64,000 nucleotides of DNA from Pocillopora damicornis (taxonomy: Eukaryota). Under the pieces are notes generated by a model. The model saw only the letters and a list, made by a program, of their open reading frames with translations. It was not told where the DNA came from and searched no databases. Every line of letters begins with the position of its first letter. Position 1 is the first letter of the stretch. Location of the stretch: the NCBI RefSeq assembly GCF_003704095.1, contig NW_020845097.1, forward strand, positions 62,001 to 126,000, given 5' to 3'. The position numbers were made by a program, and so were the translations under genes. This document shows, piece after piece, positions 53,182 to 63,281 of this stretch.

Positions 53182-56100
53182 ATGTCTCGACCAGTTTCCG
53201 TTTGCCTGTGCCTTGTGTTCCTCATGCATAGAAAAACAGAGCCGAGAAGTCTTCATTTCAACCAAGGTAAGTTACTTCTAAGCTTGTTTTTTCATTAAAA
53301 GTGTTCCAAAATGATAAGTAAGGAAAGTTGGTTTCAATCAGTTTATTTGCAACATTTTCTTCAAACCCCTTTTGACTCACGTATCCGAGGAAGTCATCGA
53401 GTTTAATAGCTGATGCTTATCTGCTGCTTTGGTAGCATCTCAGAGAACATAGAGGGTCACATGCCGATGATTGCAGTAAACCATGCGCCCTACTCGGCAC
53501 GGTGCAGCTTAAAAAATATAACGGTTTTGCCTTAATTGCTTTAGCATAAAACTGTCTATTTTGGCGAAATAGAAAAAAAGCTGTTTATAGATTTGAGGTT
53601 GACGCTCACTTCATTTCATGTTTAAAATTCGTAGTATGAAGTTAATAGTACGTTGTTCTAACGTCGAGGGGGGAGGGGGCAAACTTAAGTCAGGGTAATT
53701 TGATTTCATCAGCTGAGTTGATAATGTGCATTGGCCACGGTGGTGAGTTTTTAAAGCTGACGGTGTTTCGAGCCTTTCGTAATCATAAGCCGAACGTGTG
53801 TCAAGCTTGTTTAGGTGTAATAAACACGGCGTTCTGTCTTGACAGAATACTCAGTGCTTTGCGAATTAACAGGATGACACAAAATAAGATGAATAGACAC
53901 CAAAAATTCGAAAATGCGATCAACTTTGTGATACTTAAAACCAAAGCTATATAAATCACTTGTTTTTGCCAAAATAAGAAGTAATTTAGTCTGGTCTTAT
54001 TATAAAATGGACTAATCCCACTCTACATCAGCCATTCTTTTAGATAAATCTTGCTTGTCTCTAAGGGAACAGCTCCTTTAAAAATAAGGCCTTTTACATC
54101 TTGTAAATTGGTTGGCGCCTCTGTGGAAAATACCCCCTAGGCTCTGCGAGAAAAATTCTCGACTCGAATTCAATCTCGCGTGGTAAACTCGCTTTTCATC
54201 TCGACGTAATACGATTTACTAAGTGTAAAGCTTTTAGGACAAGATGTCCTCCCTGCGTTTTACCCCATGCCGGAATACTCGAGTATAGGGAATTTCCTTA
54301 ACTAATCCAACAGTACTTAGGGGATGAAGAGGTGACTTGAACAGTTTAATCAGAAGACATGTTTAGTGAAAAACTTTACCCTGGCAGCTCTTCATGTTAT
54401 TACACCAGATTACAGCCTTTCTCTCAGTATCATTTGTTTGTTTGTCAATAAAACTAGTTGTACAGAACAAGCAAAACTAGAACTATTTTTGCAAGAGTTG
54501 ACGCGATCAAACTTAAGTTAAATTATTATTTTGTATGCTGTTTTTTAAATCTTGTTTTGATGGGCACTGACTGAATTAGTTCTATTTCAAACTTCACGCT
54601 ATTGCTCTGCCGAACGGATTTGACCTAGCAGCGTAATTAAGGACCTCACGCCAGCACGTCCGCGAAAACGCCGACATAAAAAACATCCTTTAACAATAAA
54701 CATACATTTTTCGCTACCCTTCCGCATACATTTTGATGTTTTTAATGTTTTAAACACCGTCAGACCTTCTCTTTAACGAAGGCCGGCATCTTAGAGTTCC
54801 AAAGAGAAACGTGAAATCTTTGGTGTTGGGGTTTCCGTTCATCTAGCGATTTCGCGTTGTTATTTTTCAGAGGACGATTAGGAAACTTAATAAGTTTATA
54901 GCGCACGTGAAGATTGTTGTTTTGCACATAAATTATTTGTTTTTCCAGTTTATTCGTTTCCGTAGCTGTCCTGGTTTGTGTTTACGTCAGTTCCCTATCA
55001 CAGTTGCATAAGGACGGGTTCAAAAGTCCAATATGATTTAGTAGCTCAAAGTAAAATCATGACTTAAGAAGCGAAATAACAACTGAAATCTCCCTTCAGT
55101 TTTTAGCCATTTAAGATACATTGAACCAATTCATGAATTAAGTTTGAAACCAGGTCGCCTCGCGCCTCGCGCCTCGCTTCTTGCCGCAAAGTTAGCTTGT
55201 CGCGTTGAAGGGTTTCATGGGTTGTGCGGCAACTCTCGAGCTTAGATTAACATAAATTTTGACTTTAGTTTTAAGGTGATAGCTCGACTCGTGACGCAAA
55301 AGGGCTCAACGAGAAAAGTAACATGCAGAAGAAAACCAGCTAAATACAGGAGTGTATTGAATCAATTACTACCAAATACGAAAAAATTACAAACACTTTC
55401 TAAATTAATACTTTCTTCTTATATTTAGAAGGACCCTTGAACTCACTTCCCGACAGCGCTATTGGTCACTGGCTTCAGAAACATAACATGATGAGGAGAA
55501 TATGTCACAGGGCAACCACGGGCACAGTGCATACAGGTATACCACAGATGTAGAAATTAAGGAAAACTCGAGCTTACAACTTAGACAATACTAACGAGAA
55601 GAGAAAAAACTGTTTTTCACTGTGCTAAATTGGAATGCAAGTGCTGAACAACAGAGTTCAAGTCTTTTATTACCACAGACCAACTTCATTGTTATAACGT
55701 TAAGTTTTTTCATTCAAAATAGCTTGTTTTCAGTTCTTTACTGTTAAATGTTTCCTTAATTTCAACGAGAGGAAAAAACATGTCTATTTATTCCATCTCA
55801 ATTGTCAATGTGTTTTCTTTCCTCTCAACTACAGTCTATTAAGATCGTAAGAAACTTATGCGCGAGAAGGCAAATGGAACCGAAAAAGACAAATTTAATG
55901 AGGGAAGACAAAACGTGTGCAGGGGGTGTATGAGTGCTTTCGGTTCTAGCTCTGAAACGCAAAAATGAAGAGTAAAAGGAATCGAAAATTAAATAAGTGG
56001 AGACCAATGGAACAACAAGGGAGAATGCGTATTGAAAAACGAATTTAAATTTCATTTCCGTTTCACAATTCATGTTTTCAGCTTCCGGCGTCCGGCCAAA

Positions 56101-62905: not shown

Positions 62906-63281
62906 ATGTCGGTGCTATTTCAAATGTTCGGGATCTTTTCCACCTGTATTTGGTCCGCTATATGGATAAATGTCGTCCAAGTCCCTACTATAAGTGGATG
63001 TAAGTTGTGCAACAGCAAAGTGGAACGAGAGAAAAGATTGATTACTGTCCAAGGACAAATTTTGGCGAAGCTCGGTTTAAAGAAGCCCCCAGATGAAAGT
63101 GAAAGTGCTTCGAATGTGAGTCGTCAGGTCTTGCAGACCTACAAAAGTGCGGTGAGGGAAAAAGACAAGCTTTTACTTGAGACGAAAATTTGCCGTTCCC
63201 AGATTGACACCGAAGAGTTTTTCGCGAAGAGAGTTGAGCGAATTCTGCTGGAAAAAGAGGTCGCACGAACGGCTGTATCAA
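62906..63281 (+). CDS. Exon 1 of a TGF-beta superfamily ligand precursor (signal peptide and start of prodomain); the gene continues beyond the window
   Basis: Hydrophobic leader, CxxC, then KRLITVQGQILAKLGLKKPP (alpha1/latency lasso), VLQTY (alpha2) and EEFFAKRVERI (fastener-like). A phase-1 donor A|GTGAGT lies at 63281/63282. Confidence 0.9.

Follow-up and report, generated by a model that had tools for sequence, protein, structure and literature searches.

In the coral Pocillopora damicornis, a gene of the Pinhead family (gene A) lies directly upstream of a gene for a TGF-beta-superfamily ligand on the same strand, and a second Pinhead-like gene (gene B) faces the ligand from the other side. 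The stretch of DNA that was analysed, hereafter the window, is 64,000 nucleotides long and comprises positions 62001–126000 of contig NW_020845097.1 (C1732; 540,314 bp); the assembly searched with it has 234 Mb in 4,393 contigs. A preliminary description of the window, made from its letters alone, had proposed that, if the genome were anthozoan, which it is, gene A and the ligand would be a counterpart of the Pinhead–Admp pair of bilaterians and older than Bilateria. The three genes form a Pinhead-family/TGF-beta cluster, and we consider it rather probable that the linkage to a ligand is older than Bilateria and that the coral proteins modulate the adjoining ligand.

Pinhead-family membership and the conserved gene order

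Gene A is a bona fide Pinhead-family member by sequence, domain architecture and intron positions, which gives substance to the Pinhead-likeness suspected in the preliminary description. The strongest evidence for membership is the shared splice map. Eight exons separated by introns of phases 1,1,0,1,1,0,2, in the same alignment columns, were found in the exact splice maps of Pocillopora A, Oculina A and B, Branchiostoma floridae and Tachypleus, and one or two of the seven introns have been lost in Actinia, Amia, Styela and Tubulanus. Family members were searched for with phmmer among 1.84 billion representative proteins, with exon 4 of gene A as the query, and by full-length searches with the gene A protein (P0027). 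Exon 4 alone retrieves 61 proteins. The matches extend from the cnidarian Actinia through three Branchiostoma species ('CTCK domain-containing protein') and Styela to crustaceans, insects and a horseshoe crab, and others come from a nemertean, a crinoid, a lizard, a hagfish ('Im:7138239'), Arapaima (pnhd) and the sponge Oscarella. The Arapaima protein as query leads in turn to more than 100 vertebrate proteins, 46–59% identical, for which NCBI and UniProt use the names pnhd, Pinhead and im:7138239 interchangeably. Comparison of the cnidarian with the bilaterian Pinhead alignment by hhalign gives a probability of 100 and an E value of 2.3e-43 over 249 columns, covering all three Cys-rich modules. 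The top match of a profile made from bilaterian sequences only, when run against the coral genome in six frames, is exon 4 of gene A (E 8e-16).

Modules 2 and 3 of gene A carry complete knot motifs (VDVGQCVGKC...SCGC and IDVGRCVGTC...SCAC, respectively), and module 1 keeps the CxC (SCTC) with ISCQTS replacing CxGxC. An AlphaFold2 (AF2) model of the protein, computed with 31 family members in the input, has three beta-hairpin cystine-knot domains (pLDDT, the predicted local distance difference score, 88; pTM, the predicted template modelling score, 0.72). In an exhaustive VIA-align comparison the structural neighbours of this model are almost all cystine-knot growth factors or antagonists. Module 3 is led by Gremlin-1 (Z 7.0), NBL1 (Z 6.7), a glycoprotein-hormone-like ligand and norrin, and module 2 by TGF-beta2 (Z 6.0) and pro-activin (activin monomers, Z 5.4). 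With Z scores of 7 or less, tied within about 1 Z unit among many knot families, the predicted structure supports the fold and does not allow a subfamily to be assigned. Foldseek with the whole three-domain model returned nothing at E 0.001 or better, Pfam gave no match on single exons of gene A and no TGF_beta domain on the coral protein, and a sequence search of PDB with the full protein yielded chance-level matches only (E 0.05 or worse). The family is one without a Pfam model and without a solved relative. No mention of a cnidarian Pinhead homologue came up in full-text literature searches that paired Pinhead with Nematostella or Cnidaria, and a 2024 review that compares cnidarian with bilaterian BMP signalling names Pinhead solely as one of the regulators known 'especially in chordates' (PMC11226491).

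Gene B was found on the minus strand by a search with the gene A protein at C1732:128972–133725, equivalent to 66972–71725 of the window. It lies just past the window end and had gone unmentioned in the preliminary description. Seven homologous exons of gene B were placed by tblastn and hidden Markov model searches, and the first exon was not located. Gene B lies tail-to-tail with the ligand gene, the 3′ ends being 2.3 kb apart. Its orthologues are P0124 in Oculina, P0048 in Actinia and the transcript-derived P0041; the last, an intron-free contig of 1,479 nt from another coral, is the only form in which B-type mRNA was seen. The products of A and B are about 300 amino acids long, with a hydrophobic N-terminus and three cystine-knot modules; they are homologous to bilaterian Pinhead over their whole length, and the two genes have the same ancestral 8-exon structure.

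The preliminary description had set beforehand, as a test of its proposal, the adjacency of the two genes in other anthozoans, and this is present in both Oculina and Actinia. In Oculina patagonica the order is gene A (+), after 1.2 kb a gene whose product has TGFb_propeptide and TGF_beta domains (+), and lastly gene B (−). Similarly, one scaffold of Actinia tenebrosa has the identical three-gene order and orientation, with a gap of 1.0 kb between A and the ligand. The triplet A> TGFb> <B is common to Pocillopora, Oculina and Actinia, and the cluster is maintained across Hexacorallia as represented by these three genera. A maximum-likelihood (ML) tree has A and B as sisters (100/97 support), with anemone and coral sequences in each of the two clades; therefore the duplication and the triplet predate the split of Actiniaria from Scleractinia. 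The same-strand tandem is old within Hexacorallia and is present outside Bilateria. In the bilaterian controls Styela, Amia, Tubulanus and Anneissia, the same look-up shows a TGF_beta gene next after Pinhead on the same strand. The order and orientation of coral A and its ligand match those of bilaterian Pinhead>Admp, while the ligand subfamily differs.

Exon 2 of the ligand gene holds the only PF00019 TGF_beta domain of the 540-kb contig (94.9 bits). When exon 2 is searched against all PDB sequences, the alignments to the TGF-beta3, 2 and 1 proproteins (E 1e-48 to 4e-47) span both propeptide and growth factor. For the mature domain, TGF-beta1-3 give 126–127 bits, as against 68–73 bits for GDF8, GDF11 and BMP6, and the other listed BMP, GDF and inhibin chains are lower (down to 51). 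The propeptide, which starts with CKLC...RLITVQGQILAKLGL, is separated by an RKRR furin site from a mature domain with 9 Cys. The RGD motif is absent from the coral ligand, LGD standing in its place; RGD does not define TGF-beta sensu stricto, as TGF-beta2 also lacks it. The Actinia orthologue is entered at NCBI as 'transforming growth factor beta-3 proprotein-like'. The coral ligand is only 30–35% identical to the ligands that follow Pinhead in Amia (bowfin), Styela (ascidian) and Tubulanus (nemertean); those are of the ADMP type and share 63–73% identity among themselves. With these ADMPs as queries, the neighbour ligand ranks about 14th to 17th among the coral genome's own ligand domains. 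Judged by these scores, the partner is TGF-beta sensu stricto-like and not ADMP. The preliminary view that the partner is not ADMP-like is upheld.

The preliminary description had also offered a larger ligand array with Admp further downstream. This was rejected: the genome-wide Pfam TGF_beta scan gave 20 matches on 16 contigs, of which one is on the 540-kb contig, and the next 50 kb downstream hold no Pinhead-like match except gene B. A clear ADMP orthologue was sought across the coral genome and no ligand domain stands out; the best ADMP-like domains are 45–52% identical to ADMPs and resemble BMP5-8, BMP2/4 or GDF-type ligands, and none is on a contig with a Pinhead-like match. Local ligand arrays occur elsewhere, unrelated to Pinhead-like genes: three TGF_beta domains lie within 15 kb (C1425:354272–369349), and two are on C3445:312478–428542.

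Gene models, transcripts and the spacer

Gene A occupies 53182–61127 of the window (+), and in the splice model every intron is GT..AG. Its coding sequence of 891 nt encodes 296 amino acids with 23 Cys, and RefSeq XP_027042993.1 ('uncharacterized protein LOC113670981'), which is P0027, equals the spliced product letter for letter. The coordinates first given for the 8-exon gene ending at 61127, with a product of 296 amino acids, were all correct. The transcript evidence consists of assembled contigs of bulk RNA-seq from four independent studies, in which four of the seven splice junctions of gene A are present (58211>59374, 59436>59911, 60019>60624 and 60689>60976). The N-terminus, MSRPVSVCLCLVFLM, is hydrophobic, and residues 3–16 are modelled by AF2 as a helix. 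The features of gene A, the spacer and the ligand are the following, in window positions.

53182–53266 (+): gene A exon 1, start codon and hydrophobic N-terminus (presumed signal peptide); splice model, with the product equal to P0027/XP_027042993.1
55429–55536 (+): gene A exon 2, where cystine-knot module 1 begins; splice model, 79% DNA identity with Oculina
56971–57056 (+): gene A exon 3, module 1, its CxGxC degenerate with ISCQTS instead; splice model and alignment
57990–58212 (+): gene A exon 4, end of module 1 (SCTC) and start of module 2 (VDVGQCVGKC); phmmer matches, RNA junction to exon 5
59375–59437 (+): gene A exon 5, last residues GPNG; splice model, RNA junctions at both ends
59912–60021 (+): gene A exon 6, end of module 2 (SCGC) and start of module 3; splice model, RNA contigs
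60626–60690 (+): gene A exon 7, module 3 with IDVGRCVGTC; splice model, RNA contigs
60977–61127 (+): gene A exon 8, end of module 3 (SCAC), stop codon TAA at 61125–61127; splice model, RNA contigs
61128–62159 (+): transcribed tail of gene A (3′ untranslated region or read-through) with dispersed repeats inside; RNA contigs continuous with exon 8 reach 61330 (X3) and 62159 (X15)
62160–62905 (+): remaining spacer, with the presumed promoter and 5′ leader of the ligand; ligand RNA contigs start at 62469–62687
62906–63281 (+): ligand exon 1, signal peptide and latency-lasso-like start of the propeptide, CKLC...QILAKLGL; Pfam TGFb_propeptide (E 8e-6), RNA junction
63282–63799 (+): ligand intron, with a dispersed repeat at about 63621–63759; RNA junction, genomic copies of the repeat
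63800–64000 within the window (+): ligand exon 2, crossing the window end to the equivalent of 64638 (C1732:125800–126638); RKRR furin site and 9-Cys mature domain

From the stop of gene A (61127) to the ATG of the ligand (62906), 1,778 bp of DNA intervene on the same strand, and no open reading frame or gene match was found within them. The ligand is a two-exon gene, and the statement that a TGF-beta precursor starts at 62906, 1.78 kb downstream on the same strand with no gene between, is accurate. Most of this spacer is transcribed, as the tail of gene A (61130–62159) or as the ligand leader (from 62469). Besides the exon-8-continuous contigs, more RNA contigs from all four runs cover 61329–62089, leaving an untranscribed gap of about 300 bp between the tail of gene A and the leader of the ligand. 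The ligand junction 63281>63800 is present in RNA contigs of two runs. A blastn block at 62714–63291 matches Oculina, and its part at 62714–62905 is the sole conserved non-coding block.

Several repetitive or low-complexity tracts accompany these genes. Very high RNA-contig depth was observed at 58945–59143, 60429–60473 and 61831–61888, in introns and spacer, with contigs that continue into unrelated sequence; these three segments are repeats transcribed elsewhere, outside the gene transcripts. G-rich low-complexity tracts (GGGGNGGGG runs) are found at 59520–59610 in intron 5 and at 61230–61260, shortly 3′ of the gene A stop, and RNA contigs vary in length at 61247–61251 within the latter. The roughly 130-bp repeat in the ligand intron (63621–63759) recurs across the genome in more than 40 copies at 75–81% identity, some in adjacent pairs, and is probably a MITE-like (miniature inverted-repeat transposable) element.

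Origin and function of the linkage

The gene next upstream of admp in bilaterians is pinhead, an order reported 'from arthropods to vertebrates' (PMC6989304). In Ciona and Xenopus the Pinhead protein is a binding partner and antagonist of ADMP (PMC8188501), and in Ciona transcription of Pinhead disturbs the Admp enhancer, according to the passage of PMC6989304 that cites Imai et al. 2012. If the coral Pinhead-like proteins A and B behave as Pinhead does in Ciona and Xenopus, they would be secreted and act outside the cell as modulators of the adjoining ligand, most probably by binding or antagonising it. Given the tight head-to-tail spacing, transcription of gene A could also interfere with, or couple to, the ligand promoter. 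The most economical history would have the linkage of a Pinhead-type gene to a TGF-beta-superfamily ligand predate Bilateria, the partner having been exchanged or differentially retained. Of the proposal that a tandem cassette predates bilaterians, what stands is a same-strand linkage outside Bilateria; homology of the linkage itself between coral and bilaterians is no more than plausible, because the ligands belong to different TGF-beta subfamilies. A more far-reaching version holds that a modulator beside its ligand was a module ancestral to cnidarians and bilaterians, in which the Pinhead-type protein binds the adjoining ligand and upstream transcription gates its promoter, and that hexacorals kept the module and doubled it around TGF-beta sensu stricto, the type of ligand that has been implicated in the tolerance of algal symbionts, while bilaterians kept it around ADMP. 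We regard this full version as quite unlikely.

Several observations weigh against, or limit, the favoured explanation. The partner is not ADMP, and both ligand subfamilies split before the cnidarian–bilaterian divergence; simple homology of the 'same cassette' thus needs an extra step, either a partner swap or the loss of an ancestral array, because the ligand subfamilies differ. The Pfam TGF_beta scan has no ADMP or additional ligand on the rest of the 540-kb contig. The other two Pinhead-like loci of the coral, both divergent, C1382 at about 1010700–1015600 (−) and C978 at about 193900–196800 (+), with fused exons and altered CxC motifs, are linked to no TGF_beta domain. No ligand was found within 10 kb downstream of Pinhead in Branchiostoma and Tachypleus, and since amphioxus and horseshoe crab have none within this distance, the Pinhead–ligand linkage is not universal. 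Beyond about 190 bp upstream of the ligand ATG, comparison of the spacer with Oculina and Actinia reveals no conserved non-coding element, and the block within the 190 bp is matched in Oculina only. Both transcripts occur in three bulk RNA libraries, an observation that is neutral on exclusivity, being without spatial information. Finally, the second Cys of the module 1 CxGxC is lost in both A and B, and these genes may, to judge from the trees, be paralogs of an older lineage and not the orthologue of Pinhead.

The tree bears on this last point in two ways. When the C1382 and C978 paralogs are left out, it mirrors the species tree with sponge, cnidarian and bilaterian groups. When they are included, A, B, Oscarella and P0056 are split from the bilaterians and those paralogs (98/92 support). 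P0056 is an intronless gene for a 327-amino-acid Pinhead-like protein on metagenome contigs of 7–10 kb (L039, 6038–7021), with no TGF-beta domain in the 3 kb of DNA downstream; it groups with a protein of the sponge Oscarella pearsei (P0066; 99/92 support). Another homologue, P0034, is A-type with long introns on an ENA contig, and no ligand was seen within the flanking DNA examined.

The second topology would suit an alternative in which A and B, with the sponge sequences, are an ancient sister subfamily of Pinhead that bilaterians have lost, the C1382 and C978 loci being the real Pinhead orthologues of cnidarians and the comparison with Pinhead–Admp a non-orthologous one. It is also in line with the VDVGxC of module 1, kept in the C1382 and C978 copies and lost in A and B, and with the bilaterian profile, which scores those copies at E 1.8e-15 and 2.2e-13, as against 8e-16 for A. 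However, the models of the two copies were assembled from fragments without exact splice sites, their branches are very long (2.6 and 3.6 substitutions per site), and the tree tool flags long-branch attraction. A single cnidarian clade survives the approximately unbiased (AU) test (p 0.088), the tree without the copies agrees with the species tree, and all seven ancestral introns are kept, in position and phase, by A and B, as against the fused exons of the copies. We hold this alternative to be somewhat unlikely; A and B are Pinhead-family genes either way, be they co-orthologues or ancient paralogs. Alternatively, the linkage could have arisen independently in hexacorals, for instance by local rearrangement and inverted duplication, with no historical tie to Pinhead–Admp and possibly no functional tie between the neighbours. 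The different ligand subfamily (TGF-beta sensu stricto-like instead of ADMP), the two other coral Pinhead-like genes without a linked ligand, the amphioxus and Tachypleus genes with none within 10 kb, and a spacer without a detected shared non-coding element would all be expected from such an origin. What makes us think it unlikely is that order and orientation are identical with those of bilaterians (the Pinhead-type gene upstream, on the same strand, at 1–5 kb), that the arrangement has been kept since the anemone–coral split, and that family members stand on both flanks of the ligand, which suggests selection for linkage. The coral has roughly 26,000 genes. With about 20 ligand genes among these, chance adjacency is unlikely, the probability of an immediate ligand neighbour for one of four family members being well under 1%.

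The other alternative concerns function, and supposes that the coral Pinhead-like proteins are signalling ligands themselves, the cluster being a small array of co-regulated cystine-knot signals. Zebrafish Pinhead has been reported as a secreted BMP-like ligand that is redundant with Admp (PMC6989304), a precomputed PF00019 match exists on a few fish Pinheads, and module 2 of the coral model aligns with TGF-beta2 and activin monomers (Z 6.0 and 5.4). Nevertheless, the coral protein has neither a Pfam TGF_beta match nor a furin site before a single mature domain, the best matches of its module 3 are the DAN-family BMP antagonists Gremlin-1 and NBL1 (tied within 1 Z unit with other knot proteins), and the data from Xenopus and Ciona support binding and antagonism (PMC8188501). 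A role of the coral proteins as ligands is in our view very unlikely. We retain as the favoured explanation the three-gene cluster of a TGF-beta ligand between two Pinhead-family modulators, with a linkage older than Bilateria.

Pinhead has so far been seen as a regulator of ADMP in bilaterians, chiefly in chordates. Our study shows that the family, with its 8-exon structure, predates Bilateria and reaches a sponge, that physical linkage to a TGF-beta-superfamily ligand also occurs outside Bilateria, and that the partner of a Pinhead-type gene can be a ligand of the TGF-beta/Activin branch rather than the BMP branch. While the position of Pinhead upstream of admp in bilaterians was known, a coral Pinhead-family gene beside a TGF-beta sensu stricto-like ligand, with a second flanking paralog, is new. 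Whether a cis-coupled arrangement of antagonist and ligand is an ancient design principle or a bilaterian novelty is now a question that can be approached by experiment. The products of A and B are two uncharacterised, secreted-type candidate regulators of anthozoan TGF-beta signalling. Their potential functional interest lies in the link of this signalling to symbiont tolerance, as given in the passage of PMC5446238 that cites Detournay et al. 2012.

Comparison with known systems

The closest known system is the Pinhead–Admp pair of bilaterians. As in that pair, the coral has a three-knot gene of the Pinhead family 1–5 kb ahead of a TGF-beta-superfamily ligand, with no gene between them and in the same orientation; like bilaterian Pinhead genes, coral A has 8 exons with identical intron positions and phases; and, like the bilaterian linkage, the coral linkage has been conserved over hundreds of millions of years. 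The differences lie in the ligand, the surroundings and the host. The coral ligand is TGF-beta sensu stricto-like, with a 9-Cys mature domain and a TGF-beta-like propeptide, and it is flanked on its other side by a convergent second Pinhead-like gene. The host is not a bilaterian, and the knot motif of module 1 is degenerate. In addition, cis-competition, exclusive expression and ligand binding are established for Pinhead–Admp, whereas the coral locus is known from sequence and bulk RNA.

A likeness to the DAN-family antagonists appears in the predicted structure, in which module 3 superposes best on Gremlin-1 and NBL1, both secreted Cys-rich binders of TGF-beta-family ligands. The scores are tied with those of many other knot proteins. 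In contrast to the DAN family (Gremlin-1, NBL1), norrin and sclerostin, to none of which it has detectable sequence homology, the coral protein carries the knot three times in tandem and not once.

A further comparison is with the TGF-beta sensu stricto ligand implicated in symbiont tolerance in Aiptasia. Anthozoan TGF-beta signalling has been linked to the tolerance of dinoflagellate symbionts (Detournay et al. 2012, in the passage citing it in PMC5446238), and our literature search found no published link between an anthozoan TGF-beta sensu stricto ligand and flanking Pinhead-like genes. The ligand beside coral gene A is of the same kind as that of Aiptasia, being TGF-beta1-3-like and anthozoan, and the two are likened here by kind and not by orthology.

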